From IMG/VR virus record IMGVR_UViG_3300025869_002060, positions 164,349 to 228,348 of that record: a stretch of DNA of 64,000 nucleotides; one strand, given 5' to 3'. Below the pieces are notes generated by a model, which did no database searches, had not been told where the DNA came from, and saw nothing but the letters and a program-made list of their open reading frames with translations. This document shows positions 26,329 to 50,678 of this stretch, one piece after another. Numbering within the stretch: position 1 is the first letter of the stretch; every line of letters begins with the position of its first letter. The position numbers were made by a program, and so were the translations under genes.

Positions 26329-27133
26329 AGAAGTACTAATAAACGGACAAGAACGCAGAGATCGCACCGGCGTTGGTACCATTGGTTTATTTGGTATGCA
26401 ACAACGTTATGATCTAAACAAAGGTTTCCCAGCAGTAACTACAAAGAAACTTGCATGGAAAAGTGTAGTTAGCGAGTTGCTCTGGTTCTTAGAAGGCAGT
26501 GGCGACGAACGTAGACTAGCCGAAATATTACACAAAACAAGAGATGAAAACAAGAAAACTATCTGGTCTCCTAATGCAGAAGCAGACTACTGGTTACCTA
26601 ATGCGGAATACAAAGGCGACCTTGGTAGAGTGTATGGTGTACAATGGCGTGAATGGGGAACAGATCAAATTGAAAAACTAATTGAAGGTATTAAACAAGA
26701 TCCATTTTCACGTAGACATATACTAAGTGCATGGAATGTAGGCGAGCTAGATCTAATGGCATTACCACCATGTCATATTATGGCTCAGTTTTATGTTAGC
26801 ACAGACAACAAATTAAGTTGTCAAATGTACCAACGAAGTTGCGACATGTTTCTTGGAGTACCATTTAACATTGCAAGTTATAGTCTACTCACACATATGA
26901 TTGCCCAAGTATGCAATCTAAAAGTAGGCGAGTTTGTGCATACATTAGGCGATGCACATATATATCTTAACCATGTCAATCAAGTTAAAGAACAACTTGC
27001 AAGAGAACCGTTGCCTTTACCTACACTTTGGCTAAATCCAGAAAAAAGACATATTGATCATTTTACAATGGATGATATACGTTTGCAGAATTATCAAAGT
27101 CACGAAACAATTAAAGCGGAGATGGCAGTATGA
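26303..27133 (+). CDS. thyA: Thymidylate synthase
   Basis: DRTGVGT, TTKKL, ELLWFL, ALPPCH, YQRSCDMFLGVPFN, DAHIYLNH; start refined to MKNYLN. Confidence 0.95.
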   Translation: MKNYLNAIKEVLINGQERRDRTGVGTIGLFGMQQRYDLNKGFPAVTTKKLAWKSVVSELLWFLEGSGDERRLAEILHKTRDENKKTIWSPNAEADYWLPNAEYKGDLGRVYGVQWREWGTDQIEKLIEGIKQDPFSRRHILSAWNVGELDLMALPPCHIMAQFYVSTDNKLSCQMYQRSCDMFLGVPFNIASYSLLTHMIAQVCNLKVGEFVHTLGDAHIYLNHVNQVKEQLAREPLPLPTLWLNPEKRHIDHFTMDDIRLQNYQSHETIKAEMAV

Positions 27134-28137
27134 CCAGAGCATTAGTAACAGGCGGATTAGGACTTATTGGTCATAATATAGTACAAGAACTTGTTAGTCA
27201 AAATATCCCTACAGCCATTGTTGACAACCTAACAAATTATAACAATGCAATTAGTATGAAAGAATTAGGATATCTATTTGGTGAAAGACTTAAACTAGTA
27301 CACGACCTGCCACCTAATCTTGTTAGTTTAAATTACCTACACAAAGACATTGAAACAAACGATTTTGAATCTTGTTTTAACTTTGTAAAACCAACAGTTT
27401 TGTATCATTTGGCTTGTCCTCCTAGACAAAAGATTGTTGGACTAAGTCCACAGTTCTGCGGTAATACAATGATTGGCGGATTGCTTAATACTTTAAAACA
27501 CTGTGTCAAATACAATGTAGAAAGAATTGTTTATATTAGTTCTAGTATGGTATATGGAGACTTTGAAGATAATGTTACTGAAGATGCAGTACTAAATCCA
27601 CAAGGTGAATACGGTATTTTAAAACTTGCTGGTGAACAATTGGTCAAAGACTATCACAGAAAGTATGGACTAAATTATACTATCATTAGACCAAGTGCAG
27701 TTTATGGTCCGCTTGATTTAAGTGATAGAGTTATTAGTAAGTTTCTGTTAACTGCAATGGGAGGCGGAGAGCTTACTGTCAATGGTGAACACGAAACACT
27801 TGATTTTACATATGTTGGTGATGCCGCACAAGGTATTACGAGTGCCGGATTAAGCGAAGAAGCAGAAAATAAAACCTATAACATTACCAAGAGCCACAGT
27901 AAGACTTTATTAGCGGCCGCTGAACTAGCAGTTGAGATTGCTGGAAAAGGTACTATTAAGATCAATGAAAAAGATGATGATTTTCCAAGTCGTGGAGCAT
28001 TAGACATTACCGCGGCAAAACAAGACTTTGGGTTTGATCCCCAAGTTGATATTGAAGAAGGATTTGGCTTATATCATGAGTGGCTTTCAAATTCCGTTTA
28101 CTGGAACAAAGCGGCAATATCAAAGTTTGCGAAGTGA
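27130..28137 (+). CDS. NAD-dependent NDP-sugar epimerase/dehydratase
   Basis: TGGLGLIG, ISSSMVYG, YGILK (YxxxK), RPSAVYGP, LDFTYVGD. Confidence 0.9.
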   Translation: MTRALVTGGLGLIGHNIVQELVSQNIPTAIVDNLTNYNNAISMKELGYLFGERLKLVHDLPPNLVSLNYLHKDIETNDFESCFNFVKPTVLYHLACPPRQKIVGLSPQFCGNTMIGGLLNTLKHCVKYNVERIVYISSSMVYGDFEDNVTEDAVLNPQGEYGILKLAGEQLVKDYHRKYGLNYTIIRPSAVYGPLDLSDRVISKFLLTAMGGGELTVNGEHETLDFTYVGDAAQGITSAGLSEEAENKTYNITKSHSKTLLAAAELAVEIAGKGTIKINEKDDDFPSRGALDITAAKQDFGFDPQVDIEEGFGLYHEWLSNSVYWNKAAISKFAK

Positions 28138-29239
28138 GCTTCTTGATACTGCTGATAAAGTTTGGTCTACAGGACAACACCTAAACGGATACTACACAGA
28201 GACTTTTGAAAGTGTAATTGCTGAACGATGCAATCGCAAATATGCTATTGCTGTTAACAGCGGAACACAGGCGTTGATATTCGCTATTAGATCTCTCAAG
28301 CTACCCTTTCGTAGCAAGATAGCAATACCAGGTTTAAGTTTTGTTGCAACTCTTAACAGTATAATTGAAACTGGTTATATCCCACATTTAATTGATGTTG
28401 ACAAAGATGGTCTAATAGATCTGACAACCGATGAAGATATTGAAAAAACCTATGATGCTTTGGTATATGTTAACCTATATGGTAACATGGTTGATTATAG
28501 TAAAATTAAATTAATTACAGAATTTTTTGGACAAATTACAAAGTTACCTGTTATTGAAGATGCCGCTCAGAGTTTTGGATCCACGTTTCAAGGTAAACCA
28601 AGTGGTAGCTTTGGAGACATTAGTATATTAAGTTTTGATCCAATGAAAAACTTTAACAGTTATGGCAGTGGCGGAATGGTATTAACTGATGACATGGCTA
28701 TTGCATCAAGTGTTAGAGACCTTGCTACCAATGGCAAAGAAAATAACTATTCTCACAGTGGAACCAACAGTCGTATGAGCGAACTGGATTGTGCTTGTAT
28801 GTTAGTGAAGTTGGGCCACTTTGATAAATGGCAAGCACGCCGAAAGAAGATTGCAACTTACTGGAATGATGAATTTAACAATCATATTAGAACACTTGTT
28901 GTACATGATGATGTTGAATCAAGTTATCACAAATATCCAATATTTGTTAATCCAAATGTAACCAGTAGAAATAGATTAAAGTATAACCTACAAGAGTTAG
29001 GAATTGCAACAAAAGTACACTACGATAAAGCTCTTGGCAACTATCAATCCTTTATTGAATGTGCTTATAGTATTTACGATGCCGACCTTAGAGCCGGAAT
29101 AGAACACCAAGCCACACAAACCAACATGGCTGTAACTATAGCAAATAACCAATTGAGTTTACCTATATATCCTGAACTAACTGATGCTGAAGTTGAATTT
29201 ATTGCAGAACAAGTTAAAGATAATGCATCCAAGTACTAG
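28076..29239 (+). CDS. DegT/DnrJ/EryC1/StrS NDP-sugar aminotransferase
   Basis: AVNSGTQAL, EDAAQSFG, SFDPMKNF..YGSGG, NSRMSEL, LSLPIYP; start refined to MSGFQIP. Confidence 0.92.
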   Translation: MSGFQIPFTGTKRQYQSLRSELLDTADKVWSTGQHLNGYYTETFESVIAERCNRKYAIAVNSGTQALIFAIRSLKLPFRSKIAIPGLSFVATLNSIIETGYIPHLIDVDKDGLIDLTTDEDIEKTYDALVYVNLYGNMVDYSKIKLITEFFGQITKLPVIEDAAQSFGSTFQGKPSGSFGDISILSFDPMKNFNSYGSGGMVLTDDMAIASSVRDLATNGKENNYSHSGTNSRMSELDCACMLVKLGHFDKWQARRKKIATYWNDEFNNHIRTLVVHDDVESSYHKYPIFVNPNVTSRNRLKYNLQELGIATKVHYDKALGNYQSFIECAYSIYDADLRAGIEHQATQTNMAVTIANNQLSLPIYPELTDAEVEFIAEQVKDNASKY

Positions 29240-30014
29240 AAAACTTGATAAGTTTCTTTACAGTAACAAAGTACATGCTTCAGCATTTGAAAAAGGCTTG
29301 AACGGAGATATCCGTGACTTTAGAGGCCAAACCCTTGACTGGCTTCCAACGGATACCGAAAAGCTATACCTAACAAATATTAAAAAGTTTCCTGAGTTTT
29401 TTGCAGACAAGGAATGGACACAACCAGGAAATATTACATATCATATCAATGCACACGGGTTTCGTGGAGAGTTCTATACTGAGCCAGATATAGTAGCACT
29501 AGGATGTAGTAACACTATGGGCATTGGGTTACCCGAGGATAAGATATGGTGCTACCAACTTGGTCAAAAATTAAATATGACTGTAACCAATTTAGGAGTT
29601 GGCGGAATTGGTACAGACAGTATATATAATATTGTTAAGTCAATGATATTATCAAAGATAGTAAAACCTAAATTTGTTGCAATGCTTGTGCCACCAATTG
29701 GAAGACTTGAAATACGTACAAATCATCATGATGTTCAACAAGTGAACACTGCGTCAGATAGTGCTACATTAATAGGTAAACATTGGTGGCTTAATGATGA
29801 GAATAGCACACTGTTTGATGAAAGAAATATTATGGCAATTTACTTTCTACTAGAAAGTTTAAATATTCCAATTATACACTTAAACAGTAATCAACTCCTG
29901 CACCGGCAACACCCCAAGGGAGATCTTGCAAGAGACATGATGCATCCTGGTCCTGTATCACACAACGGACTATCTCAACTTATGGCAAACCTAGTAGAAG
30001 CAAAACTAACTTGA
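29223..30014 (+). CDS. SGNH-like protein
   Basis: ALGCSNT (block I), NLGVGG (block II), RDMMHPG (DxxH). Confidence 0.65.
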   Translation: MHPSTRKLDKFLYSNKVHASAFEKGLNGDIRDFRGQTLDWLPTDTEKLYLTNIKKFPEFFADKEWTQPGNITYHINAHGFRGEFYTEPDIVALGCSNTMGIGLPEDKIWCYQLGQKLNMTVTNLGVGGIGTDSIYNIVKSMILSKIVKPKFVAMLVPPIGRLEIRTNHHDVQQVNTASDSATLIGKHWWLNDENSTLFDERNIMAIYFLLESLNIPIIHLNSNQLLHRQHPKGDLARDMMHPGPVSHNGLSQLMANLVEAKLT

Positions 30015-32657
30015 CTCAAACTTTTCTTTGAGCCACGCCCAATCAAAACTCTTTTGTAGCTCTATAGGATCACCATCTACTTCTTCATAATATCTAAGTG
30101 CATCACTTGCACCTTGTATACTATAAACACCATTCAAACTATCTCGACCTTTTGTTAGCCAAGAAGTAAGTCTAGCTTCATTTTCAATACTAGGGTTTAT
30201 GTCATCAAACTGTTTCAGTTTCAATACTTCACGAAATGCTGTACGCCAAGTCATCCACGGGTCTGTATTGTAATGAGCAGTGCCGCTAAGAACTGGTACA
30301 ACTTCATGTGGAGCACTCAGTGTAAAGTCCAGTCCTGGTTGGTTTGTGGCTAGTGTAAGACGCTTATTATAAGCTATAACCCCCATGTGTCCGTATTCTA
30401 ATCCGTTTACTGGATTACGTGCATTAAAAATATAGTGCTTTGCTTGTTGGAAATAGTCTGGTTGCCAAGTAAAATCAAAGTCTCGTTCTACTTCAATTTT
30501 AGCAAACACTGCAAAGAACCATTCAGTGTTTGATGCATGGGCCGCGGCTTGGTATGCTTTTACACGACCATCAATACCTTCAATGTGATGTATTGTATTC
30601 TTATGTTCTAATGCTCCTGCTGGATCTTTTGTAATTGCTACATCTATTAGATGTGTGTACCAACGATTTGCTTCAGTCTCGCCGTTACTGATAAAACATA
30701 TATCCAATGGTCGTGGTATAAAATCAGAACGTCCCGGAGACTTTTTATTAATATAAGGAAAGTCATATACCTGTTCAATTTGACGTTTACTAATATCACG
30801 AGGTATAACAGCCAAGCTATTGTCGCTGGTTAAACTTACAACCTCACGGTCTTTTTGCCTCCACAAACATATAGCACCATATACTTCGGAAGTGTAACGT
30901 ATTGATGCCCCCATGTTAGGTAATAGATTATCTTGTTTCTGAAAAACGGCATATGGAAAATTGGACCAAACATAATTGTTAATTGTATCAACCATGTTAT
31001 CAGTGGTGTATTCAACAACAGGCATTGGCCATCTTTTTAGTTCTTGTTCTAATGTATAATTAATAACGTTGAACCAATCCAGTATTTCTAAATCATACAT
31101 CTGAGTTTTAAAACTCTCAACGTGTATATAAAAAGTATCTCCTCGTTTTTGTCCGTTACTAGGAAATACGTGTATCATTTCGTTTTGCCAAGGCTCAGGT
31201 TGCCAACTAAAATCAAAACGAGCATAGTCACAAATACTGTTGATGATCCAAATGTATTCATGTCCTTCGTGGTTGTTAATAATTCTTTTGAATGTATCCA
31301 GATAGTTGTCAACAAAACGTGTAACAGTTATATTATTGTGTTGACTTTGCAGTTTGTCAAGTTGAACTTGACTTTGTTCATTACCCCAATCAACATATAC
31401 AATAGCATGTAGATCATCAGGTACAGTAACAGATTGTTCTTTAACAAAATTTAAATTTGGAAACTCCGTTATGGAGTTGGCCCATTGACTTGATCGTTGA
31501 AATTCAAACTTGTTAATTAAAAAAGTATCACTCCATTTTTGCCATTGGCTACCAAACACATGAGTCATATAACTTTGCCAACTCTCAGGACGCCAATCAA
31601 AATCAAATTCATCATATACATTTTCGCTACTAATAATCCAAAATCTATTGGTACTACTACGACTAACACATCTGCGTACTGTTTCCAACATTGAGTTGGC
31701 GTAGCGAATCTTTTGCATTCCAGGGTACTTTTCTAGTAGTTTTTCGTACCTTGCCTTAGCTAAACTATTGTTTTTATCTACGTAAAATACATCTATTTCT
31801 TTGAAGGTGCCAATGTCGTGTCCTGGAAAATAATCCATCAATTTAACTTCTGTAGCACCTTCAACAGTGTACATCAATCCGCTTGATTGTATATCACCAA
31901 TTGGAAAATGGTATATGTACGGAGGATCAAGTACATTGGGTTTCCATGTAAAGTCAACTGTTGATTCATCAACATCGTCGGGTATTGTCCAACATTCTTT
32001 GCTTTCGTCTTGCGTACTTATAAAGTCTGCAATTTTAATTTGTTCACCCATTCCGTATGTAATGCCACCTGCACTTTGCCACTTAGTAGGAAAATGGTAT
32101 GTGTATTCTGGATCTAATATGTTAGGATGCCAACTGGTATCAATTGACATGTCATTGGGAATATGCCAATTATCTAATACTGGAAATGCTGTTGCTATTT
32201 GTGCATCAACTAACTTAACTCCAGCAGTGCCAGAATACACAGGACCTCCTGCACTTTGGTGTTGTGTAGGAAAGTAATAACTGTAGTCAGGTTCATGTGG
32301 ATCAGGATGCCAACTATAATCAAAATTTTCTGTATATTCAGTATTAATAAATTTTGATTTGTCTGACAAACGTGTTACAGTTTGATCTGTGCAGAAATGG
32401 TATTGCATTTCTTGTATACGTTTACTCACAAGATATACTTCGCCATCACGTTGCCATTGGCTGGCCCAACAATGTACATACTTTTCCATCCAAGGCTCTG
32501 GAACCACATGAAAGTTAAAGTTTGAGTAGTCATTACCGCCATATAAATAGAAACAATACCTAGTACGACTTAGTTTGATAGCTTCAGTTAAACTTGAAGC
32601 AGGCTTCTCAAACTCAAATAAACCAGGCTTAGGGCCAAAGTAAAAAACATCAAACAT
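30006..32657 (-). CDS. Large repeat-containing protein with C-terminal GT-A-like domain
   Basis: Seven copies of an (F/V/I)DxxWxP...H/Y.F motif; C-terminal DICFISNGE...AWRTAFRE-like domain paralogous to 47138..48070. Confidence 0.65.
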   Translation of the reverse strand: MFDVFYFGPKPGLFEFEKPASSLTEAIKLSRTRYCFYLYGGNDYSNFNFHVVPEPWMEKYVHCWASQWQRDGEVYLVSKRIQEMQYHFCTDQTVTRLSDKSKFINTEYTENFDYSWHPDPHEPDYSYYFPTQHQSAGGPVYSGTAGVKLVDAQIATAFPVLDNWHIPNDMSIDTSWHPNILDPEYTYHFPTKWQSAGGITYGMGEQIKIADFISTQDESKECWTIPDDVDESTVDFTWKPNVLDPPYIYHFPIGDIQSSGLMYTVEGATEVKLMDYFPGHDIGTFKEIDVFYVDKNNSLAKARYEKLLEKYPGMQKIRYANSMLETVRRCVSRSSTNRFWIISSENVYDEFDFDWRPESWQSYMTHVFGSQWQKWSDTFLINKFEFQRSSQWANSITEFPNLNFVKEQSVTVPDDLHAIVYVDWGNEQSQVQLDKLQSQHNNITVTRFVDNYLDTFKRIINNHEGHEYIWIINSICDYARFDFSWQPEPWQNEMIHVFPSNGQKRGDTFYIHVESFKTQMYDLEILDWFNVINYTLEQELKRWPMPVVEYTTDNMVDTINNYVWSNFPYAVFQKQDNLLPNMGASIRYTSEVYGAICLWRQKDREVVSLTSDNSLAVIPRDISKRQIEQVYDFPYINKKSPGRSDFIPRPLDICFISNGETEANRWYTHLIDVAITKDPAGALEHKNTIHHIEGIDGRVKAYQAAAHASNTEWFFAVFAKIEVERDFDFTWQPDYFQQAKHYIFNARNPVNGLEYGHMGVIAYNKRLTLATNQPGLDFTLSAPHEVVPVLSGTAHYNTDPWMTWRTAFREVLKLKQFDDINPSIENEARLTSWLTKGRDSLNGVYSIQGASDALRYYEEVDGDPIELQKSFDWAWLKEKFESS

Positions 32658-34643: not shown

Positions 34644-34655
34644 TTTATTGTCCTC

Positions 34656-36759: not shown

Positions 36760-36860
36760 TTATAGATAAACGGATCCCGTTTGCGTAATTCTTTAAGTTT
36801 TTTGCGATATGCAATCTCTAATTTCACACGGTTAATTAAACTCTTAAACCATTTGATCAT
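36756..36860 (-). CDS. 34-aa basic micro-protein (not in ORF track)
   Basis: MIKWFKSLINRVKLEIAYRKKLKELRKRDPFIYK; stop overlaps the next ATG (ATGA). Confidence 0.75.
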   Translation of the reverse strand: MIKWFKSLINRVKLEIAYRKKLKELRKRDPFIYK

Positions 36861-39972: not shown

Positions 39973-39973
39973 A

Positions 39974-43014: not shown

Positions 43015-44356
43015 TGTACCACTCCGCTAAGGTTGGAAACGTAGCGGTAAAGTCTTTACCTCTGCGTTGGTCGTATTGTGAATAAAATTGTTTAAAATCG
43101 TTGTGAAGTTTAGGCATTTCAAATGTTTCTCTATGTGGAGTTTTAACAACATCTAAGTAATCAATTAAACGCTGTACATGATTAATTTCGTGTTCATGTA
43201 ACATTGCATGGTTACGAAAATTAGATAACCAATCTTGTAATCTTTGCTTGTGATGTTCCCTAATCTCGTCAGGTAACACAAGAGGTGATTGGAAACTTGG
43301 AAAGCGTAAAATATTGAGTGTAAAGTTTGGAAAGTCTCTGCCAAACTTTGATTTCCATTCTAGCATCCACGTTAAGAACTCAGGTAAACTTTCTAAGCAT
43401 AATGCATTAATGGTATTCATTACATGCAATCCTCGTAGTTTACCACTTCGTATCAGTAGCTCTACGTTTGCTGTCCATTGTTTCCATTCTAATCCATCAC
43501 GTATATATTCGGCTTGTAGACCCATACTCTCGTTGCTGGTATATAAGTCTAATTCAAGATGTTCTGCCGCATCAAGCAATTTCTCAACTTTTTCGCTTTC
43601 AAATCCCAAGTTGCTGTTAATAGCAATTCGAGTTTTTGACTTACCTTTGTTTTCTTTAAACCAATCAAACAGGTCCCATGTGTGACCGCTCATCAACGGC
43701 TCTCCGCCAGTGATACGTAATTCTTGTAATGTTTCGTGCAAGTCACTTTCCCACCATTTGAAAAATGCTTCAACGTATGGGTTGGTTTCGGAATACTTGT
43801 ACAAACTTGCTTCGTTGTGTTCATGTGTAAAGTGATTACGACCATCGCTTTCTAGACCGGCATATGCTCCATTCTTTTTAATATCTTTAACCCATGTAGT
43901 ACTGAACGCTGGGTTACAATAACTACATGCAAACTGACAAGTTCTATCAAAAGCAATTTCAAGTGTACGCAAGTTAACATCATCTTCCGGAGGTGTATTG
44001 TATGCATCTTGTAATAATTTGTCACTGTAGATTACACTTTTGTAAACTCTATCACTGATATTATCTCGTTTAATATCTTCAATCTTCCAGCAGTATTCGC
44101 AACCTTTGGGCCTTACACCTGTGAGCATATCAGCACGATCTTGTTTCTTTTGTGAACTGTTGTGCAATGCTCTTGGATTAAATTTAACTTCATCAACATC
44201 AACTTTGTGTGCTGGTGGATGATGACAACTTGTAGTCATACCACTGCCTAACCATATAGTAGCATTATACCATTTGGCTCCACAAAAACTTGCACTCTTT
44301 GGATCAAGAATTCTTTTTCTAAATTCTAAATCTGTTTCATTAACTAACTTAGGCAA
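43001..44356 (-). CDS. Radical SAM protein with N-terminal SPASM/twitch-like domain (copy 4, AKW subtype)
   Basis: CGAKW...SCHHP...CEYC; CQFACSYC; TGGEPL. Confidence 0.9.
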   Translation of the reverse strand: MPKLVNETDLEFRKRILDPKSASFCGAKWYNATIWLGSGMTTSCHHPPAHKVDVDEVKFNPRALHNSSQKKQDRADMLTGVRPKGCEYCWKIEDIKRDNISDRVYKSVIYSDKLLQDAYNTPPEDDVNLRTLEIAFDRTCQFACSYCNPAFSTTWVKDIKKNGAYAGLESDGRNHFTHEHNEASLYKYSETNPYVEAFFKWWESDLHETLQELRITGGEPLMSGHTWDLFDWFKENKGKSKTRIAINSNLGFESEKVEKLLDAAEHLELDLYTSNESMGLQAEYIRDGLEWKQWTANVELLIRSGKLRGLHVMNTINALCLESLPEFLTWMLEWKSKFGRDFPNFTLNILRFPSFQSPLVLPDEIREHHKQRLQDWLSNFRNHAMLHEHEINHVQRLIDYLDVVKTPHRETFEMPKLHNDFKQFYSQYDQRRGKDFTATFPTLAEWYNGLK

Positions 44357-45440
44357 AGTGTTCCTCCATTTCGGATATATAGTTTACTATCTTTGTGCCA
44401 CGATGTCTATCTCTAATAGTAATCATATCTAAAAATTCTTTCCAGTTTTCTTCATTGGAGTTATCCAATGTATTGATAATTCCTTCTAAACCATTTTGTG
44501 CTTCGTAGTCAACAGCACGAAGTCTATCTTGTGCAAGTTGAGCTAATTCTTTTGGCAAACATACAGGTGCCAGATAATGAGGCTTTGTTAATATATCAAA
44601 CTGTACAAAAAGCTCTTCCTGTTCAGCCCACTCTAATAATCTATCAATATATAATACATTTAAATTTTGTACGACTGTGTTTACAAAAATATTAGCATCG
44701 GGTATTTGACGCATCAACTCTATATTATTAGTTATAACATTCCATTTACTTGGATATCTTATGTAATGATTAAGTTCTGCATATCCGTCAATACTTAAAC
44801 ACATCTTAATGTCGTGTGCTGACAATACATCAACCCAACTTTGATCAAATTTAGTTCCATTTGTTGCAATCATTATTTCTTTACGTTGTGTCAATGATGA
44901 AAGAATATCGCGAACCCAAGGCAACATAAACGGTTCGCCTCCTCTTAGAATAAAACTATCACAGTGTTCCATTATTTCAAGTATCTTGTAATTGTCTTTT
45001 TCATTCCAATCGTATTTCTTCTGATCCCATACCTTGTCAAACAGTTTGTTTTCTTCAACTAAAAATTGACTACTAGATTGCGGATTACACATCAAGCATT
45101 TCAAGTTACATAAATTTGATAACTGTATTTCCCAATCCAGTGGCTGTTCTGTTTGTTCTGTTATGTCACTCCAACGTTCATTGCTGTACTGTCGAAAACT
45201 TTTTGATCCTTGCTCCTCTTGTTTATAACAACGAACACATTCATCACTGTGTTCATTGTTCTTTATACGCTTTCTTAGATCATTGAGATAATCGCTATTC
45301 CACCACTCGTCAACAGAGTGTGTTTTCATATTAAAATCTGTTGTAACAAAACTACGACAACAAGGCATAAAACGTCCTTGGGTGTCTACTAGACTATGCA
45401 TAAACGGACGCACACAAAATTTATCGTTATCTTTGAGCAT
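44349..45440 (-). CDS. Radical SAM protein with N-terminal SPASM/twitch-like domain (copy 5)
   Basis: CVRPF...CC...CVRC; CNLKCLMC; RGGEPF; ATNGT. Confidence 0.9.
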   Translation of the reverse strand: MLKDNDKFCVRPFMHSLVDTQGRFMPCCRSFVTTDFNMKTHSVDEWWNSDYLNDLRKRIKNNEHSDECVRCYKQEEQGSKSFRQYSNERWSDITEQTEQPLDWEIQLSNLCNLKCLMCNPQSSSQFLVEENKLFDKVWDQKKYDWNEKDNYKILEIMEHCDSFILRGGEPFMLPWVRDILSSLTQRKEIMIATNGTKFDQSWVDVLSAHDIKMCLSIDGYAELNHYIRYPSKWNVITNNIELMRQIPDANIFVNTVVQNLNVLYIDRLLEWAEQEELFVQFDILTKPHYLAPVCLPKELAQLAQDRLRAVDYEAQNGLEGIINTLDNSNEENWKEFLDMITIRDRHRGTKIVNYISEMEEHFA

Positions 45441-46833
45441 AATATCTACACTGTTTCCAAAACTCTTCCATCTCAGGAAATGTTGCTAAAAAGTTTGTGT
45501 CTCTGCGTTTATCGTGTTCAGTAAAGAACCTATAAAAGTCTGCACGATTGTTTTGCAAATATTGTTCAGGTAATTCATCTCCTTTACGCATCCACGCTAT
45601 ATCTCTACGCATACGCTGTACTTCATAATCTTTAAATCCGTGGAATGGATCGTCTTTGGTTTCTAAGTTTCGTTCCATCCAATTTGCAACTTCTTCTAAT
45701 TTTTCAGCATAAGGCCATGGCAATATCTGTAGACTTTGCCAAGTTGGTTGACGCAACAATGGTGTATCAAACCATATACGCTGATAAGTTGAACTAAACG
45801 CTTTACGTAAATCAAGTATCCATTCTAACTGCTTTTTAATTCCACTCACACTCAAGTTATTCATTGTAATAATAAATGTTAAACTATTACGCTCGGGCAC
45901 CTCTCCTAAATACCTATATACATTATGATGCATACGAGTCCATTGAAGTCCGTGCCTAATATATTCTGCTTGTTCTGGCACACCAGTGTCAAGGCTAACA
46001 TATTGCATAAAATGTTCTATTTGTGTTTTACATAACTTTTTTACGTAACCAATATACTTTTCAAACAGTTTATCTTCAACACTGAAGTTGCTTGTTACAT
46101 TTAGATGTAACTCTGGATTTGGTAATGCTAGTACATAATCAAACACACGATATGTATTGTTATCCATCAACGGTTCACCACCAGTCATACGGAAATGTTT
46201 TAGGTGTGGGTATAACGAGGGCCACCATTCCCAAAACGCATCAACATATGGATTTTCTTCTCTGTGTGGAATTGGTCTATTACGCCCAACAAAATGTTCA
46301 GGTGCATTATGCGGAACACTAGTAGGATATGCTCCTACTTTTTTAGTTTCCTTCATCCATGTGCTACTAAATTGTGGACTGCAATACGAACAGGCCAAGT
46401 TACATGCATTATTAAAATTAACTTCAACGTAACTAGGTTTCCAGTCTTCGTCACCAGTACTGTTTTTAATTGCTTCGTAATCACTGGCCGCCCAAGGTTC
46501 TCCACTGCGATAATGTCTATCGCTTAGGTTACCTGAATCCTCAATGTTCCAGCAATACTGACACTCTGGAGGACGTTCACCTTTGAGCATCATTTTACGC
46601 TGTTCTTTTTTGTGTTCTGTATTGTGCAATGCATTAGGATCGAGTTTTACTTTCTCGCGATCCATTTGATGCAACGGAGGATGATAGCAACTATTATTCA
46701 GCCCTGTTGGTAAATGAAAACTTACTTGTTTCCATTTTGCTAAACACAAGCCGTGGCCAAGATTATCTTTCATAAACTCGGCACTAGCCATAAACTTACT
46801 TTTATTACCTACGGATTCGTCACCCTTGTTCAT
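45427..46833 (-). CDS. Radical SAM protein with N-terminal SPASM/twitch-like domain (copy 6, AKW subtype)
   Basis: CLAKW...SCYHP...CQYC; CNLACSYC; TGGEPL. Confidence 0.9.
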   Translation of the reverse strand: MNKGDESVGNKSKFMASAEFMKDNLGHGLCLAKWKQVSFHLPTGLNNSCYHPPLHQMDREKVKLDPNALHNTEHKKEQRKMMLKGERPPECQYCWNIEDSGNLSDRHYRSGEPWAASDYEAIKNSTGDEDWKPSYVEVNFNNACNLACSYCSPQFSSTWMKETKKVGAYPTSVPHNAPEHFVGRNRPIPHREENPYVDAFWEWWPSLYPHLKHFRMTGGEPLMDNNTYRVFDYVLALPNPELHLNVTSNFSVEDKLFEKYIGYVKKLCKTQIEHFMQYVSLDTGVPEQAEYIRHGLQWTRMHHNVYRYLGEVPERNSLTFIITMNNLSVSGIKKQLEWILDLRKAFSSTYQRIWFDTPLLRQPTWQSLQILPWPYAEKLEEVANWMERNLETKDDPFHGFKDYEVQRMRRDIAWMRKGDELPEQYLQNNRADFYRFFTEHDKRRDTNFLATFPEMEEFWKQCRYYAQR

Positions 46834-47136
46834 TTACCATCCCATCATAAATCGAGTTTCTTCAGGTACCATTTCTATTGTAAACGGTGGATCAAATGTT
46901 GTGTTAACAATAACACTCAACACTTCTGGTGCATACCCTGCTTGTTGTATATCACTAACAATTTGATCTGCAAACGGACAGAATGCACTTGTTAATGTGT
47001 GCGTGATTGTAACTTCGTATTCGCTTTGATCTATCGCAATATCGTATATCAATCCTAAATCATATACATTACAACTTATTTCTGGATCAAAAACTTTACG
47101 TAAGTTTTCAATAACAATATCTTTATCTATTGCCAT
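46834..47136 (-). CDS. SufT/PaaD-like (DUF59) Fe-S assembly protein
   Basis: LRKVFDPEI..NVYDLGLIYDI; TLTSAFCP; FDPP. Confidence 0.9.
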   Translation of the reverse strand: MAIDKDIVIENLRKVFDPEISCNVYDLGLIYDIAIDQSEYEVTITHTLTSAFCPFADQIVSDIQQAGYAPEVLSVIVNTTFDPPFTIEMVPEETRFMMGW

Positions 47137-47137
47137 T

Positions 47138-48070
47138 TTACCAACCCTCTATTCTGCGAATAACATCAATTTCTTTTGTCATTAGCTCTAAGTTTTTATG
47201 ACCAGTTGCATAGTGATATTTAAAGAAAGCACTTTGTTCTGCATCAAGTTCAACAATATTTAATGCTAATCTATTATTAAGTAATTCTGTAATAGTTTCC
47301 ATGTCATTATGATTTCCTATTGCAGTAACTTCGAGGTATTCTTCATGTAAGTATGCAAGTTTATCAAAGTCTTGTACTTGAGTAAAATCCCAATCCGACA
47401 ACATTGTTTTGTATGTGCCGTACCGAGCTCCGTTGATTGCTTCTTCTCCGTGTTCAACATCACGACCAATTGTTTGCCAAATCTGCAAGTGATCTAGATT
47501 ACGTTTCTTTGCGTTATCATCGAACTCTTGCAGACTTGGCTTGCGTCCACGATCTAAGCACATTTTAACACCTTCGCGAAAACCAGCCCTCCAGGCATGA
47601 TATTGACTTCCGTTAGGATATGTAGTGCTATAGCAGTTGTGCATAGGGTAGTAAGTTTCCTCGAAACAAAACTCTACAGCCGTTTCGTGACTCCCGTCAC
47701 TTGCTTCGTGGGTTCGCATATTGTTAACAAAGCCTTTGCTCCAGACACTCATGCCACCATTACCATACATTAATCCATTAATGTGGTTACGTGCTTTCCA
47801 TCTAAAAGCAGAGTCTTCGCCAGGCGTTTCAATTTGTAAATTAAAAAACTCTGGATCTGGAATATTATCGCCATCAATTAAAACAAAAAAGTTAGTGTCA
47901 CTTGCATCAGCACACGCCTTATGAGCCGCATCTGATCCTTTAACGTTATCTACTCGTTTTGCCCATGGAACAATATTCTGTATTTGTAGCCAGAATTCTT
48001 CTTTCTGAGGTTCGTCATAACTTAAATAGATGCAGTCTAAATCTGCAACATCAGTGATTTTCAAATCCAT
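47138..48070 (-). CDS. GT-A fold glycosyltransferase-like protein
   Basis: DCIYLSYDEP, KGSDAAHKAC, FVLIDGDN (DxD), AWRAGFREGVK. Confidence 0.7.
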   Translation of the reverse strand: MDLKITDVADLDCIYLSYDEPQKEEFWLQIQNIVPWAKRVDNVKGSDAAHKACADASDTNFFVLIDGDNIPDPEFFNLQIETPGEDSAFRWKARNHINGLMYGNGGMSVWSKGFVNNMRTHEASDGSHETAVEFCFEETYYPMHNCYSTTYPNGSQYHAWRAGFREGVKMCLDRGRKPSLQEFDDNAKKRNLDHLQIWQTIGRDVEHGEEAINGARYGTYKTMLSDWDFTQVQDFDKLAYLHEEYLEVTAIGNHNDMETITELLNNRLALNIVELDAEQSAFFKYHYATGHKNLELMTKEIDVIRRIEGW

Positions 48071-48338
48071 AGTATTGCCCTTCTCCGGAGTTAATTAATA
48101 TACCAGCATGATTCTTAGCAGACTTATACGAACTGATTTTACATTTTTGTAATAACATTTGATCAGGATTATCTGTTGCACGAGTAAGTTTTCCATTGAC
48201 TACTCTTAGGCGTGTATACTCAGGTCTATCGTACATTGCTTTATTGATACGAATAAATCTACCAGGAACCTCTTCATTGACTGTTATCCTAATAGGCATT
48301 CCTGCCTCATCATAGTATAACCTGTAGATAAAATCCAT
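48051..48338 (-). CDS. Hypothetical protein
   Basis: Start refined to MDFIYRLYY (TAATG overlap with the upstream micro-ORF). Confidence 0.7.
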   Translation of the reverse strand: MDFIYRLYYDEAGMPIRITVNEEVPGRFIRINKAMYDRPEYTRLRVVNGKLTRATDNPDQMLLQKCKISSYKSAKNHAGILINSGEGQYYGFENH

Positions 48339-48463
48339 TATTTTAAAATCCATAGCAGAGTTAATCCCACTGTAAGGAATGCAAGTAAATGCCATATCTT
48401 AAGTTTAGGATACACAACGTGGCCTTTGTTTTCGTCTTGTAAATCATCCCATATGTTTTTCAT
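48338..48463 (-). CDS. 41-aa membrane micro-protein (not in ORF track)
   Basis: MKNIWDDLQDENKGHVVYPKLKIWHLLAFLTVGLTLLWILK; C-terminal TM helix; fills the gap between two genes. Confidence 0.65.
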   Translation of the reverse strand: MKNIWDDLQDENKGHVVYPKLKIWHLLAFLTVGLTLLWILK

Positions 48464-49298
48464 AGTCTTGTATTAACTCCTTAACTTTAAATTTTTTATC
48501 ATGATAATGTACTGGTTGAAGTTGTTGTACGTTATTAATACGCAATTCATTTAATTCATTTTCAACCAGCACACTATCAAATATTTGTGTACTCTCAGCC
48601 CAACCTTGTATACCCGGTTTCATATGTGCAAATGTAAAGAAATCTAAGCTAGGAACATAAGGCTCAATTTCTAACATTGCTGATACAATACTGTAAACAA
48701 CATCAGTTGTAGGATTTTCATCACGTATATTAGTAAGTGCAAAATCACGCACTTCAGTCCAGTTACGATATACGTCACGAGCTAGGGTAAAAAACTCTGT
48801 TGCTTCGCGACTGTACCGGAAATACATCATACCATTATATACATCAGGTAAATTATTATCACTGAATAACTTACGATAGCGATTGCCTGTGTATAAACGT
48901 TGTTGCAGATCTACTACTCCATGACTTAAAACTACATTTCTTAATCTAAGTGCTGGCCACCAATGGGAGATATTCCTTGGAAACAGCAAATCAGATTCAA
49001 GTTTGATGGTCTCTTTAAACGGCGTTAACCAGAATGATTGCCATTCGTTGGCCAACTTCCATTCATCATTTTCAGCTTCATCAATTTCTAGGGTAATAAC
49101 GTAGTCGAACGCACGGCGTTGAGTGTCTGTTATTTGAGACTTAGTAAACTCGTCAACTATGACAGCATATAGACTGTCGGGCTGAGTTACCTTTATATTT
49201 AGCGCCTGAAGGTAGGCCAGCTCTAAATAATCCACATCATTTGTGTTCTGTGCAATAGTTAGAAATCCTCTTTGAGCACAATGTGGTTGTTTACGCAT
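48444..49298 (-). CDS. GT-A glycosyltransferase-like protein (GT8-like)
   Basis: GFLTIA, YLELAYLQALNIK, TPFKETIKLESDLLF, VYNGMMYF. Confidence 0.65.
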   Translation of the reverse strand: MRKQPHCAQRGFLTIAQNTNDVDYLELAYLQALNIKVTQPDSLYAVIVDEFTKSQITDTQRRAFDYVITLEIDEAENDEWKLANEWQSFWLTPFKETIKLESDLLFPRNISHWWPALRLRNVVLSHGVVDLQQRLYTGNRYRKLFSDNNLPDVYNGMMYFRYSREATEFFTLARDVYRNWTEVRDFALTNIRDENPTTDVVYSIVSAMLEIEPYVPSLDFFTFAHMKPGIQGWAESTQIFDSVLVENELNELRINNVQQLQPVHYHDKKFKVKELIQDYEKHMG

Positions 49299-50037
49299 TT
49301 AATACCTCTTCAAACTCTATACTTTGTAGATATTGTTTGTCGTGGAAATGCAAAGATATGTATGGTAAAACATATGCTCCGTCGTCTGTAATAACTTTGA
49401 TCCAATCGTCTATAATAATTTGGTTAACTTTGCCTTGAATAGTTTGTATACTCCACGGTATTTTAGTAGAAGTATCTTCAACATAACCATTTACTAACCT
49501 ATCTGCAATAGTAAAAGCGGCATCATTGCGAAAATTACTTGTCTGTAATTTATACAATGCACGATAATAAGGATAGTTGTTTTGTATCATTTTAGCAAAC
49601 TCAAATAAATCCTTTGACTTCTGTGTCTTATTAAATACAATTACTGTAGCCCATAACATAGGACCAATCGATAACTGTCCAAGAGTATCAACCAAGTTTT
49701 CTTTGTTAACATAAGTGTTCTTGTCTACTATAGCATAATCTTGTACAGTGTCAAGTACTTTGAGTAAATTACTATCAAATATTAGATAATCGCCGTCAAC
49801 TAATATAGTTTGATCATATGGAGATAAGTCGTATGCTTCACACCTTCCGGTATTTTGCCATTCGACTATTTCATTGTCCACTCTTCTTTTATTACTTGAC
49901 TTTGTACCACTTACAATAGTTGTTGGCAATCCAAGATACTTTTTAATTAGTTTAGCATTAATTTTTGCAATCTTTATATAATCAATTTCTTTTGTATTAG
50001 TTGCAAATATTAATACACCTTTAGACTTTTCTGACAC
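49291..50037 (-). CDS. GT-A glycosyltransferase-like protein (GT8-like)
   Basis: YDLSPYDQTILVDGDYL (DxD), WATVIVFNK, FRND. Confidence 0.7.
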   Translation of the reverse strand: MSEKSKGVLIFATNTKEIDYIKIAKINAKLIKKYLGLPTTIVSGTKSSNKRRVDNEIVEWQNTGRCEAYDLSPYDQTILVDGDYLIFDSNLLKVLDTVQDYAIVDKNTYVNKENLVDTLGQLSIGPMLWATVIVFNKTQKSKDLFEFAKMIQNNYPYYRALYKLQTSNFRNDAAFTIADRLVNGYVEDTSTKIPWSIQTIQGKVNQIIIDDWIKVITDDGAYVLPYISLHFHDKQYLQSIEFEEVLNA

Positions 50038-50326
50038 GTTTTAGTTCCTGGTGTTGAGTATGCCAATCATTCATTACTGCTTGGTAACGTTGATTGGCTA
50101 ACTCTAATAATTCATAACGTTTAATAGCAATAGGATTATTATACGTATCTTCGAGGAACATGTCTTCGTCGTTCCAGGTTGACAAAAAAGAAATTAGTTC
50201 AGGTGTGATATAAAACAGTCCACCATTATAGGTTACATGTAACTCTGTAACCATTTTTTCTCTAAGTGCTTTTTTATTTGTTTGGAATTTAGTAGCTGAC
50301 TTAACACGTTCTACTATATCAGTCAT
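50021..50326 (-). CDS. Hypothetical protein
   Basis: 101-aa ORF directly after ACP in the same run. Confidence 0.75.
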   Translation of the reverse strand: MTDIVERVKSATKFQTNKKALREKMVTELHVTYNGGLFYITPELISFLSTWNDEDMFLEDTYNNPIAIKRYELLELANQRYQAVMNDWHTQHQELKRVRKV

Positions 50327-50327
50327 A

Positions 50328-50582
50328 TTATTTTCCTTGAACTTTTCTTACATTCTCTATAAAGGTAATTGCATCCTCTACGGTATGAAAATTTTCAGCA
50401 TCGCTATCATCTATTTCAATCTGAAATTCTTCTTCAAATGCCATAGCCAACTCAATGGTATCCAGGCTATCGGCCCCCAGATCATCAACAAAGTCTGAAT
50501 TTAAATATATATTTTGTTCTTCAACACCTAGGTGTTCTTCTAAGATATTGATTATTCTAGGTAAAGTGTCTTCGTAAACCAT
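50328..50582 (-). CDS. acpP: Acyl carrier protein
   Basis: DDLGADSLDTIELAMAFEEEF phosphopantetheine-attachment motif; acidic 84 aa; GGAG RBS. Confidence 0.93.
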   Translation of the reverse strand: MVYEDTLPRIINILEEHLGVEEQNIYLNSDFVDDLGADSLDTIELAMAFEEEFQIEIDDSDAENFHTVEDAITFIENVRKVQGK

Positions 50583-50610
50583 GTAATACTCCTAAACGAA
50601 AGTTGCTAGT

Positions 50611-50639
50611 AGTATATAACAAAAAACCCACTCTGTCAA
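50611..50639 (-). promoter_or_regulatory. Sigma70-type promoter for the ACP-led transcript
   Basis: Minus strand TTGACA-17nt-TATACT. Confidence 0.8.
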
Positions 50640-50658: not shown

Positions 50659-50678
50659 GTTTAATTAGTGGAAATTTA

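Follow-up and report, generated by a model that had tools for sequence, protein, structure and literature searches.

A conserved phage gene island beside tail-fibre genes, carrying six radical SAM enzymes of one unstudied family and most likely building and decorating a sugar chain

We analysed a stretch of 64,000 nucleotides (positions 164,349 to 228,348) of IMG/VR virus record IMGVR_UViG_3300025869_002060, a large uncultured aquatic phage, and refer to this whole stretch as the window. Beside the tail-fibre genes, and beginning directly after the nucleotide-metabolism genes frd and td, the window carries a tightly packed block of about 25 soluble enzymes, whose boundaries at 27130 and 50582 coincide with the start of an SDR gene and the start of a minus-strand ACP gene, respectively. 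The genes and features of the block and of its fibre-side boundary are as follows:

27130..28137 (+), extended SDR of the NAD-dependent epimerase/dehydratase family, epimerase-type
28028..29239 (+), DegT/DnrJ/EryC1 PLP aminotransferase (sugar aminotransferase); the true start is probably downstream of the listed TTG
29184..30014 (+), u276, a possible SGNH-like protein
30006..32657 (-), rep883, an 883-aa multi-domain protein with six FDxxWxP motifs and a C-terminal u310-like GT-A-type domain that lacks DxD
32656..33738 (+), u360, a conserved orphan
33727..34242 (-), peptide deformylase, accessory and probably unrelated to the glycan
34224..34643 (-), u139, a small NMNAT/NadM-like nucleotidyltransferase
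34656..36140 (-), NodU/CmcH-family carbamoyltransferase
36103..36759 (-), SGNH/DUF6071-like protein of 218 aa
36844..37626 (-), u260, an SGNH-like protein
37604..38692 (-), u362, a conserved orphan with no known fold, likely a partner of the radical SAM enzymes
38674..39972 (-), rSAM1, N-terminal-twitch radical SAM enzyme
39974..40483 (-), u169, a possible 2OG-Fe(II) oxygenase, accessory
40473..41696 (-), rSAM2, N-terminal-twitch radical SAM enzyme
41689..43014 (-), rSAM3, N-terminal-twitch radical SAM enzyme
43001..44356 (-), rSAM4, N-terminal-twitch radical SAM enzyme of the 4/6 subtype shared with phage RsoM2USA and Bdellovibrionota
44349..45440 (-), rSAM5, N-terminal-twitch radical SAM enzyme, accessory
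45427..46833 (-), rSAM6, N-terminal-twitch radical SAM enzyme
46834..47136 (-), SufT/DUF59-type Fe-S assembly protein, accessory
47138..48070 (-), u310, a predicted GT-A-fold glycosyltransferase-like protein with DEP and DGD motifs and a new helical C-terminal part
48051..48395 (-), u114, a small orphan
48444..49298 (-), u284, a GT8-like (glycogenin-like) GT-A candidate
49291..50037 (-), u248, a GT8-like GT-A candidate
50021..50326 (-), u101, a small conserved protein between the fibre-like gene and the transferases (a fibre chaperone is only a guess)
50328..50582 (-), acyl carrier protein, accessory
50583..50678, intergenic boundary with a G+C-rich hairpin with T/A runs and a sigma-70-like promoter facing the island
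50679..51602 (-), fib307, a Ser/Thr/Gly-rich fibre-associated protein

The minus-strand run from 33727 to 50582 holds 20 genes, with a largest gap of 84 nt. No island protein has a transmembrane segment. In the intergenic boundary, the hairpin (50622-50649) has 11 pairs and the promoter-like site (50639-50611 on the minus strand, TTGACA-17-TATACT) matches 11 of 12 positions, although both are consensus matches only.

To establish the identity of these genes, we first searched their translations against Pfam and NCBIfam. The SDR matched Pfam Epimerase (1.2e-36); its translation shows TGGLGLIG, SSSMVYG and YGILK, and lacks the Asp-Glu pair associated with 4,6-dehydratases. The aminotransferase matched Pfam DegT (5.8e-74) from residue 34, and its best NCBIfam matches were PseC-, LegC- and DesI-like, all below their equivalog cut-offs. 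The carbamoyltransferase carries both the N and C domains (Carbam_trans_N, 5.5e-40; Carbam_trans_C, 1e-49), and the deformylase (Pep_deformylase, 2.9e-36), the SufT-like protein (FeS_assembly_P, 4.4e-11, with SUF_assoc, SufT and PaaD-like hits all below their cut-offs) and the ACP (PP-binding, 3.7e-14, with an intact DSL serine at residue 38) were likewise recognised. All six radical SAM enzymes belong to a single uncharacterised family with an N-terminal twitch domain, NCBIfam NF033640, with scores of 299 (rSAM1; cut-off 170), 351 (rSAM2), 406 (rSAM3), 307 (rSAM4), 281 (rSAM5) and 319 bits (rSAM6). All six keep CxxxCxxC, four N-terminal Cys and GGEP, yet they are only 22-32% identical to each other, with rSAM4 and rSAM6 sharing 32% identity.

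The assignments of the remaining proteins are weaker. The SGNH-like calls rest on a GDS or GCS block I motif (GCS at residue 107 of u276, GDS at residue 10 of the 218-aa protein and at residue 7 of u260), together with a DUF6071 hit (29.0 bits, cut-off 27) and a sub-threshold Lipase_GDSL_2 hit (22.8 bits, cut-off 32.9) for the 218-aa protein; u260 gave only a faint DUF6071 match (E 0.014) and no PDB hit, and u276 had no Pfam or PHROG hit. The possible oxygenase u169 has an HxD motif (HTD at residue 95) but no family hit. A profile of u139 hit NMN adenylyltransferases at 1.3e-08, but this copy has Asp in place of the first His of HxGH (GRFQPWDPGH, against WHPGH in the consensus of the relatives). 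u101 and u114 had no family hits, and u360 had no Pfam, PHROG or PDB profile hit.

Given that several of these orphans were candidate glycosyltransferases, we next turned to structure prediction and sensitive profile comparison. The AF2 model of u310 (pLDDT 87.1) retrieved a Foldseek PDB list dominated by GT-A glycosyltransferases, and in a viral library the matches, after two rep883-like proteins, were also mostly GTs, including mycobacteriophage ones (Che8 and Ardmore proteins, of which the Che8 protein is named a glycosyltransferase). The u310 family comprises at least 8000 clusters in metagenomes. The u310 HMM matched residues 689-882 of rep883 (iE 7e-41) and, weakly, residues 286-350; BLASTP of rep883 against u310 gave 2e-11, and large uncultured-phage proteins of 804 and 1076 aa are the top viral fold matches of u310. 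The paralogues u284 and u248 have weak but specific support: the u284 profile hit only glycogenins (GT8; E 0.03-0.05), through the DxD region, as did a joint profile of the two, and u248 has a DGD motif at residue 81. In contrast, the AF2 model of u362 (pLDDT 82.8) had no Foldseek PDB match (best E = 2). This family spans 651 clusters at 50% identity, lies beside rSAM1 in the relatives checked, and in one protein, P0246, is fused to an N-twitch radical SAM enzyme, suggesting that it is a partner of these enzymes.

We then asked whether the block is conserved as a unit, one of the points on which the earlier note had proposed that its reading could fail. The block is co-conserved in many uncultured phages, across IMG/VR relatives and mis-binned phage contigs, down to about 35-60% amino-acid identity, which shows that it is not a chance assortment. 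The SDR lies next to DegT in relatives L024, L027-L029 and L031; the carbamoyltransferase is conserved at 53-81% identity, u360 at 31-68% and u101 at 30-73% (including in RsoM2USA), rep883 and u260 are also conserved, and rSAM6 has orthologues at 56-90% identity in phage relatives. Other genes are accessory. The ACP, the SufT-like gene, the oxygenase, the deformylase and the nucleotidyltransferase-like gene occur only in the closest relatives: the deformylase was found only in contigs identical to ours, the ACP only in relative L003 and the identical contigs, u169 only in these and L028, and the SufT-like gene in only some relatives. An orthologue of rSAM5 was found only in L003 and the identical contigs, u276 was seen only in the closest relatives, with homologues in few loci, and u114 is weakly conserved in some relatives. 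fib307 accompanies the u101-u248-u284-u310 block in most relatives. A sub-module also recurs in the soil Ralstonia jumbo phage RsoM2USA, where ORF355, which matches fib307 (27% over 233 aa, E 4e-08) and the N-terminal motif of fib509, immediately precedes u101-u248-u284-x-u310-radical SAM, next to the tail sheath and structural genes.

Outside phages, cellular relatives of the family, and specifically those of rSAM4/6, are concentrated in Bdellovibrionota (36-50% identity to rSAM6), where they form tandem arrays of up to 10 copies in these predatory bacteria. In 25 of 39 loci of at least 15 kb, they have GT1, GT2, ABC-2 exporter or NDP-sugar dehydratase neighbours, and in one isolate genome four radical SAM genes are interleaved with four GT2 genes. 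However, several arrays of 7-10 radical SAM genes have none of the six counted glycan-type neighbour families within 10 kb, so the radical SAM enzymes need not act on sugars.

Taken together, the observation made in the earlier note, a packed biosynthetic island at 27130-50582, is confirmed, and its parts list is mostly right, with one epimerase, one DegT, one carbamoyltransferase, three SGNH-like proteins, an oxygenase-like and a SufT-like protein, an ACP and six intact radical SAM enzymes. Of its five GT-like proteins, u310 is supported at the level of predicted fold and u248 and u284 weakly, whereas u360 is unsupported by any tool and the u310-like domain of rep883 lacks DxD; it did not list the deformylase or the orphans u362, u114 and u101. 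Its interpretation, an unusual acylated and carbamoylated glycan for virion proteins or the host surface, is only partly supported. A glycan-type biosynthetic and tailoring island next to the fibre genes is supported, with independent backing from the cellular neighbourhoods and the u310 model. In contrast, the parallel drawn with aminoglycoside pathways (BtrN/NeoN, TobZ, BtrI) is only a loose analogy, because all six radical SAM enzymes form one distinct family and no island ORF hit a cyclitol-forming enzyme family. As the ACP is restricted to the closest relatives, acylation is not a core property, and the NMNAT-like protein may serve NAD metabolism rather than sugar activation. The claim that no phage pathway of this scale has been characterised is fair, although such cassettes have already been noticed in marine T4-like phage genomes, without a mechanism being given (PMC7029224, PMC5332604).

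Several alternatives to glycosylation of a virion protein were considered, of which host envelope remodelling is the main one, although we regard it as unlikely. In this scenario, the island would change the O-antigen, capsule or another surface glycan of the host during infection, by altering nucleotide-sugar pools and lipid-linked intermediates at the cytoplasmic face and relying on the flippase or exporter of the host, so as to block superinfection or stop progeny sticking to infected cells and debris. The cellular relatives sit in typical surface-polysaccharide clusters, exactly this role has been proposed for the GTs of the pelagimyophage host recognition cluster, in which radical SAM cassettes were also noted (PMC7029224), and the sigma-70-like promoter is compatible with expression before the late genes. 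Yet no polyprenyl-phosphate transferase, flippase, polymerase, ligase or exporter was found in the island, nor any membrane segment, and the fibre-protein-plus-transferase sub-module is conserved between marine phages and a soil Ralstonia phage whose hosts must have unrelated surface glycans.

Less likely still, the radical SAM enzymes might act on a protein or peptide and, like their SPASM/twitch relatives in RiPP pathways, install cross-links or epimerised residues in the adjacent fibre proteins, with the transferases serving a separate function. The PDB neighbours of the radical SAM profile include the RiPP enzymes TvgB (8vpo), SkfB and YydG, and some cellular arrays lack counted glycan-type neighbours; however, the best neighbours also include enzymes acting on nucleotides and sugars (viperin, BlsE, MoaA and BtrN), no precursor-like small Cys-rich ORF was noted, no RiPP recognition element was found (the u362 model matches no known fold, including RRE structures), and radical SAM and GT genes are roughly 1:1 and interleaved in Bdellovibrio sp. 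HCB2-146. Hypermodification of phage DNA to evade restriction appears very unlikely. The position after frd and td and the solubility of all the enzymes would fit, phage GTs that build glycans on DNA are known (Pyle 2024, cited in PMC12619734), and a carbamoyltransferase making a carbamoylated hydroxymethyl-cytosine is reported to exist. But the thymidylate synthase homologue has the dUMP-specific Asn (PFNIASY) and the catalytic Cys and is thus an ordinary dTMP synthase, no base hydroxymethylase or DNA transferase-type protein was seen in the window, the cellular context of the radical SAM enzymes is polysaccharide, and the phage appears to have a separate 7-deazaguanine route (FolE plus a QueE-like enzyme). 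A diffusible aminoglycoside-like or nucleoside-sugar metabolite acting on the host or on competitors, which the earlier note held conceivable, is the least likely: DegT, radical SAM enzymes, carbamoyltransferase and ACP are also found in antibiotic pathways, and BlsE and BtrN are among the profile neighbours, but in addition to the absence of cyclitol-forming enzymes, no exporter or resistance gene was seen among the island ORFs, the ACP is not conserved, and there are several glycosyltransferase-like proteins and a fibre protein in the conserved module.

We therefore tentatively favour a fully cytoplasmic, phage-encoded glycan assembly and tailoring system. In this view, the epimerase-type SDR and DegT would make an amino sugar from a host nucleotide-sugar, and GT-A-type transferases (the GT8-like pair u248/u284 and the new u310 family, whose inactive-looking relative is embedded in rep883) would add sugars to an acceptor. 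The carbamoyltransferase and up to three SGNH-like proteins would add or trim carbamoyl and acyl groups, and the six deeply diverged radical SAM enzymes, with u362 as likely partner, would each perform a distinct radical tailoring step on the sugars, for example oxidation to a keto group, epimerisation or deoxygenation, the SufT-like protein, the ACP and the oxygenase being lineage-specific add-ons. Our analysis itself establishes the family memberships, the GT-A fold (as a model), the co-conservation, the glycan context of the cellular relatives and the absence of membrane proteins, whereas the chemistry of the radical SAM enzymes, the order of steps and the acceptor are inferred; no glycan or glycoprotein has been observed, and every functional statement rests on homology, fold or context. 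Several observations also weigh against this reading: the ABC-2 exporters of the cellular clusters point to surface polysaccharide rather than protein glycosylation, fibre adjacency could simply reflect a hypervariable host recognition cluster where accessory genes accumulate (PMC7029224), the promoter and hairpin separating the island from fib307 hint at separate, possibly earlier, expression, the SDR residues leave no clear source of the keto-sugar for DegT, and u360 and rep883 are not demonstrably active transferases. Nevertheless, the lack of transmembrane segments, the position beside the fibre genes, the recurrence of a fib307 homologue with the module in RsoM2USA and the precedent of phage-encoded virion glycosylation in mycobacteriophages (Freeman 2023, cited in PMC12619734) point to a virion acceptor, of which fib307 or neighbouring fibres appear the most likely, and this would make the island a system for virion glycosylation.

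The island proposed in the earlier note holds up as an observation, and its coordinates match gene boundaries. The genes are arranged as follows:
27130-30014, plus strand: three genes
30006-32657, minus strand: one gene encoding an 883-aa protein, rep883
32656-33738, plus strand: one gene, the orphan u360
33727-50582, minus strand: an uninterrupted run of 20 genes, in which most neighbours overlap by 8-38 nt and the largest gap is 84 nt

The rep883 and u360 genes start back to back, with start codons overlapping by 2 nt (32656-32657), so that both promoters must lie inside coding sequence. The T4 late promoter motif TATAAATA occurs twice in the 64 kb, fewer than the chance expectation of about 8, and therefore gives no information on timing; one of the two sites lies at 32542-32549, 107 nt upstream of u360. 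G+C content is even across the window, at about 35-38%. Dihydrofolate reductase (frd) and thymidylate synthase (td) genes lie upstream of the island, whereas tail-fibre genes and a 1708-aa virion protein lie downstream. Other features of the surrounding sequence are:
2158-3339: a GT1 (GT-B) glycosyltransferase, the first gene of a second small sugar cluster (2158-4929) about 22 kb upstream of the island
3341-4339: a nucleotide-sugar epimerase of the same cluster
4336-4929: a 197-aa ORF of the same cluster matching only the N-terminal part of DegT, possibly a truncated aminotransferase
5226-5924: GTP cyclohydrolase I
8524-9396: a QueE-like radical SAM enzyme
10489-11217: another DUF6071 (SGNH-like) protein, of the same Pfam family as the 218-aa island protein
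21611-23803: a 423-aa HNH-endonuclease-family protein (phrog_1314) and a dienelactone-hydrolase/S9-like alpha/beta hydrolase, between the ATPase gene and the frd-td pair
51621-53165: a fibre protein with a C-terminal Peptidase_G2/IMC-type autoproteolytic domain
53227-54756: a fibre protein sharing with the preceding one an N-terminal region at 35% identity over about 300 aa
56162-57970: a 602-aa protein with collagen-like tail-fibre repeats

To place the phage, we compared its 1708-aa virion protein with those of cultured phages and found the closest relatives in jumbo phages such as PA5oct, Atu_ph07 and Rak2-like phages, rather than in cultured pelagi- or cyanomyophages. The window is identical to IMG/VR contigs of up to 228 kb, and related contigs reach 338-359 kb; it therefore belongs to an uncultured aquatic jumbo myovirus. 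Megablast of the whole island against 50,697 phage records found no match. In tblastn searches, the orphan u362 found none, the orphan u310 found only Ralstonia phage RsoM2USA, and rSAM3, one of the six radical SAM proteins, found only distant hits in Vibrio and Ralstonia jumbo phages.

We next investigated which enzymes the island encodes. Curated models confirmed an extended SDR of the epimerase/dehydratase family, a DegT aminotransferase, a two-domain NodU/CmcH carbamoyltransferase, a peptide deformylase, six radical SAM proteins, a DUF59/SufT-type protein and an acyl carrier protein (ACP). The DegT/DnrJ/EryC1 match is full length (250 bits over profile positions 3-359 of 360), although it reaches no equivalog cut-off that would name the sugar. 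The SDR does not qualify as an NDP-hexose 4,6-dehydratase: it scores 109 bits against an equivalog cut-off of 365, and instead of the Asp-Glu acid/base pair after the catalytic Ser/Thr it reads SSSMVYG, as in 4-epimerases, together with YGILK. The carbamoyltransferase carries both the N-terminal (Kae1-like; 138 bits, cut-off 24) and C-terminal (YrdC-like; 169 bits, cut-off 27) Pfam domains, but is not a NodU equivalog (134 bits against a cut-off of 1000). The ACP has the PP-binding domain (53 bits, cut-off 20.8) and the DSL serine at residue 38. Other assignments of the earlier note received less support. Of the three proteins it called SGNH-like, the 218-aa protein and u260 carry a GDS block near the N-terminus whereas u276 has GCS at residue 107, and only the 218-aa protein reaches a family cut-off (DUF6071, 29.0 bits against 27), with Lipase_GDSL_2 falling below its cut-off. 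The supposed oxygenase, u169, has an HTD motif at residue 95, with later His and Arg-x-Ser candidates visible in the sequence, but gave no Pfam or PHROG hit even at E 10. The supposed nucleotidyltransferase, u139, is NMNAT/NadM-like (1.3e-08), has Asp in place of the first His of HxGH, and may belong to NAD metabolism rather than to the glycan.

All six radical SAM proteins fall into a single NCBIfam family, NF033640 (N_Twi_rSAM), in which the twitch domain is N-terminal to the radical SAM core, with scores of 281-406 bits against a curated cut-off of 170. The CxxxCxxC cluster motif, the GGEP SAM-binding motif and four N-terminal cysteines are invariant in an alignment of the six paralogues plus the RsoM2USA homologue. 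Consistent with an auxiliary-cluster domain ahead of the core, Pfam SPASM matches at residues 9-105 precede the Radical_SAM match in four of the six, and the twitch region of BtrN aligns to profile positions 16-93. The six are only 22-32% identical to one another and are therefore old paralogues with, presumably, six different jobs. No paper in the literature searched characterises this family, and searches for its name, and for radical SAM enzymes in O-antigen synthesis or in Bdellovibrio, returned nothing relevant.

Several island proteins have no curated family, and for these we turned to predicted structures and profile comparisons. The u310 family has at least 8000 clusters in public metagenomes, none of them named. 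An AlphaFold model built from 22 sequences (pLDDT 87.1) predicts a Rossmann-like GT-A fold: its structural neighbours in the PDB are almost all GT-A glycosyltransferases (RmlT, GlyE, SunS, TarP and B4GalT), with probability up to 0.98, although E-values (only 2e-3) and TM-scores (about 0.3) are modest. In a library of viral structures the neighbours are rep883-like proteins followed by a long list of phage and giant-virus glycosyltransferases, with mycobacteriophage Che8 and Ardmore proteins, Che8's named a glycosyltransferase, among them. The family keeps DEP and DGD motifs, the latter (residues 66-68) being near-invariant and fulfilling the DxD metal/nucleotide-sugar criterion. By sequence, however, u310 belongs to no curated glycosyltransferase family, since only Glyco_tranf_2_3 was hit at E 0.092 and 13 bits (cut-off 27) and no PDB sequence was found. 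The rep883 protein carries a u310-like domain at residues 689-882 that lacks the DxD motif, plus six FDxxWxP motifs. The joint profile of the paralogues u248 and u284 hits only glycogenins (GT8), weakly (E 0.03-0.05) and over the N-terminal half through the DxD region, without a Pfam Glyco_transf_8 hit; u248 has DGD and u284 has ESD at the aligned position, and an invariant His followed by a near-invariant Lys lies near the C-terminus, where GT8 enzymes have a metal-binding His. PDB profile searches with u310, u360, u260 and u362 returned nothing usable, which leaves the 'GT-like' label that the note gave u360 without support.

The orphan u362 yielded a confident model (pLDDT 82.8) that matches no solved structure. 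Its family has 651 clusters at 50% identity, and one member, P0246, is a fusion of u362 with an N-twitch radical SAM enzyme, which links u362 functionally to the adjacent radical SAM genes. Seven further proteins of about 710-775 aa carry the u362 domain at the C-terminus; their N-terminal part of about 400 aa matches no island protein by BLASTP, and the six of the seven that were scanned against Pfam gave no hit.

Given that the note had named lack of co-conservation as grounds for rejecting its reading, we searched 30 IMG/VR loci with all island proteins by tblastn. A core was found in fixed order: u101, u248, u284, u310, rSAM6, rSAM4, rSAM3, rSAM2, rSAM1, u362, (u260, the 218-aa SGNH-like protein), carbamoyltransferase, (u360), rep883, (DegT, SDR). 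It is conserved down to about 35-60% identity and is flanked by the fibre-associated protein fib307 and by fib514 in most relatives whose contigs reach that far. Thus the block is co-conserved, although the ACP, SufT, rSAM5, u169, the deformylase, u139 and u276 occur only in the closest relatives. The cultured soil phage RsoM2USA (344 kb) has a mini-version, ORF346-354, comprising u101, u248, u284, one extra gene, u310, a radical SAM enzyme of the 4/6 subtype and a rep883-like gene, all annotated as hypothetical. The gene directly upstream, ORF355, combines the conserved N-terminal fibre motif with a body homologous to fib307 (27% identity over 233 aa, E 4e-08), and the next genes are a confirmed structural protein and the tail sheath. 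A fibre-like protein is thus part of the conserved module in two very different phages.

We then asked whether the radical SAM family has cellular relatives. Because an alignment of all six paralogues plus the RsoM2USA homologue was too divergent, 185,579 species genomes were scanned with the rSAM4/6 subtype, to which the distribution reported here applies. The scan returned 79 loci. Thirteen were classed as phage-like and set aside; at least six of them, binned into MAGs named Haliscomenobacter, Betaproteobacteria TMED41, Rickettsiales, Neomarinimicrobiota and Fischerella, carry the fibre genes and the whole module and are evidently mis-binned phage contigs. The other 66 are almost all Bdellovibrionota, including an isolate and complete chromosomes. 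In those loci the family forms tandem arrays of up to 10 paralogues, and the recurrent neighbours are GT1 and GT2 transferases, ABC-2 exporter pairs and an NDP-sugar dehydratase, at least one of which is present in 25 of the 39 loci that are 15 kb or longer. In Bdellovibrio sp. HCB2-146, four radical SAM genes are interleaved with four GT2 genes and an acetyltransferase. A Peptidase_S74 fibre protein also lies beside that cluster, but this turned out to be a single case rather than a pattern and is not used as evidence. These neighbourhoods are the strongest independent evidence that the family works on glycans, yet the association is not universal, since several arrays of 7-10 copies have none of the six counted glycan-type neighbour families within 10 kb. 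In one array (L111 6380-17915, Bdellovibrionales chromosome OZ220490; also loci L065 and L062), eight tandem radical SAM genes sit in a row between a PhoH-like gene and an asparagine-synthase-like gene, and the roughly 840-bp gap after the first copy holds only short, unconvincing ORFs; other loci have 9-10 copies. The most recurrent neighbour, an unnamed family of about 320 aa found in 17 loci (for example L037:3724-4659), has no Pfam hit and shows no relation to any island protein by profile-profile comparison.

The family memberships, conservation and genomic contexts described so far rest on sequence comparison, and the u310 fold was predicted by modelling, whereas the pathway, its chemistry and its acceptor are inferred. 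No island protein has a hydrophobic segment convincing as a membrane helix, and no initiating phosphotransferase, flippase, polymerase, ligase or exporter was found among the Pfam families of the island ORFs, so that the system does not fit a Wzx/Wzy- or ABC-dependent surface polysaccharide locus and is taken to be cytoplasmic and soluble. In this view, the SDR and DegT would make an amino sugar, the keto intermediate for which might come from a radical SAM dehydrogenase, as with BtrN and its aminotransferase; GT-A-type enzymes would transfer the sugars; and these would be tailored by carbamoylation, by acyl transfer or removal, and by up to six radical reactions. The solved structures nearest to the radical SAM profile are mixed (viperin, BlsE, MoaA, BtrN, and also the RiPP enzymes TvgB and SkfB) and do not single out one chemistry. 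For the acceptor, the soluble enzyme set, the fibre adjacency and the fib307-containing module shared with RsoM2USA favour the phage's own fibre protein. We consider the glycan nature of the product likely, but the virion acceptor remains tentative. The interpretation offered in the note is partly supported.

The main alternative is remodelling of the host surface glycan, as proposed for pelagimyophage islands (PMC7029224); it is favoured by the exporter-containing cellular clusters and by a sigma-70-like promoter with a hairpin between fib307 and the island. Modification of phage DNA is a weak alternative: the only thymidylate-synthase-family protein in the window, which covers part of a roughly 200-kb genome, is a canonical dTMP synthase, so that no support was found there for a hydroxymethyl-pyrimidine pathway, and GTP cyclohydrolase I together with the QueE-like enzyme suggests a separate 7-deazaguanine (preQ0-type) route and hence DNA modification independent of the island. 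As for a RiPP-type pathway, the small conserved proteins u101 and u114 are not Cys-rich or leader-like, and the u362 model matches no known fold. The aminoglycoside analogy drawn in the note holds at the level of enzyme classes, namely a twitch-type radical SAM enzyme, a DegT-family aminotransferase, a NodU/CmcH carbamoyltransferase and an ACP, and a radical SAM dehydrogenase feeding a DegT aminotransferase is a known logic; the pathway proteins in question are BtrN/BtrS, NeoN, TobZ and BtrI. However, the twitch domain here is N-terminal and the family is a different one, no island ORF hit a cyclitol-forming family in Pfam (2-deoxy-scyllo-inosose or inositol-phosphate synthase), the ACP is not conserved, several GT-like proteins are present, and a fibre protein is in the module.

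Related arrangements have been noticed before. Marine T4-like environmental phage genomes with many radical SAM genes and PaaD/SufT-like and other Fe-S helpers were noted in 2017 (Nishimura 2017, PMC5332604), and the host recognition cluster of marine T4-like myophages, pelagimyophages and cyanomyophages, in 2020 (Zaragoza-Solas 2020, PMC7029224). There too, a variable island in the structural region holds tail fibres together with glycosyltransferases, GT8 being the most common, and radical SAM cassettes, and peptide deformylase is a common phage gene. Those papers list gene categories and propose O-chain modification, but give no mechanism and do not define the module, the radical SAM family, the conserved order or the cellular relatives. 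In mycobacteriophages, virion glycosylation by soluble phage-encoded GT-A enzymes acting in the cytoplasm is established (Freeman et al. 2023, as cited in PMC12619734). Those systems, whose hosts are Actinobacteria, are known to comprise a few transferases only, without radical SAM enzymes, carbamoyltransferase, aminotransferase or SGNH proteins. Mimivirus and other giant viruses decorate their own surface fibrils using virus-encoded nucleotide-sugar pathways (SDR plus DegT-type aminotransferase) and several glycosyltransferases, with clade-specific gene content, and many giant-virus glycosyltransferases appear among the fold neighbours of u310; these are eukaryotic viruses, however, and no radical SAM array or carbamoyltransferase is known there. 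The Bdellovibrionota arrays share the radical SAM family (36-50% identical to rSAM6) in tandem sets of diverged paralogues often interleaved with glycosyltransferases, but use ordinary GT1/GT2 enzymes, have ABC-2 exporters, lack u310, u248, u284, u362, the carbamoyltransferase and fib307, and are likewise uncharacterised. What the island adds to these precedents, besides its much larger size, is the array of N-twitch radical SAM enzymes, the u310 family of predicted transferases, the putative partner u362 and the link to predatory bacteria.

A more far-reaching possibility, which we regard as unlikely but not excluded, is that tandem arrays of N-terminal-twitch radical SAM enzymes are a new class of radical glycan (or glycoprotein) tailoring enzymes, each paralogue being paired with a transferase step. 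Two kinds of bacterial predators, jumbo phages and Bdellovibrionota, would then use them to build chemically unusual sugar coats, in phages on a dedicated fibre protein (fib307) and with the fold-orphan u362 as an obligate partner.

The N-terminal-twitch radical SAM family, unstudied in the literature searched yet forming arrays of up to ten paralogues in predatory bacteria, is now linked to glycan clusters, and the presence of a compact conserved module in a cultivable phage, RsoM2USA, gives a direct experimental route to its chemistry, while u362 and the C-terminal part of u310 offer new folds, as judged from their models. If the virion reading is right, this would be the largest glycosylation machinery known in a bacteriophage, and the first known to use radical SAM chemistry. 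Given the at least 8000 sequence clusters of u310 alone in public metagenomes, fibre glycosylation in such phages would bear on host recognition, virion stability and grazing or decay in the sea.
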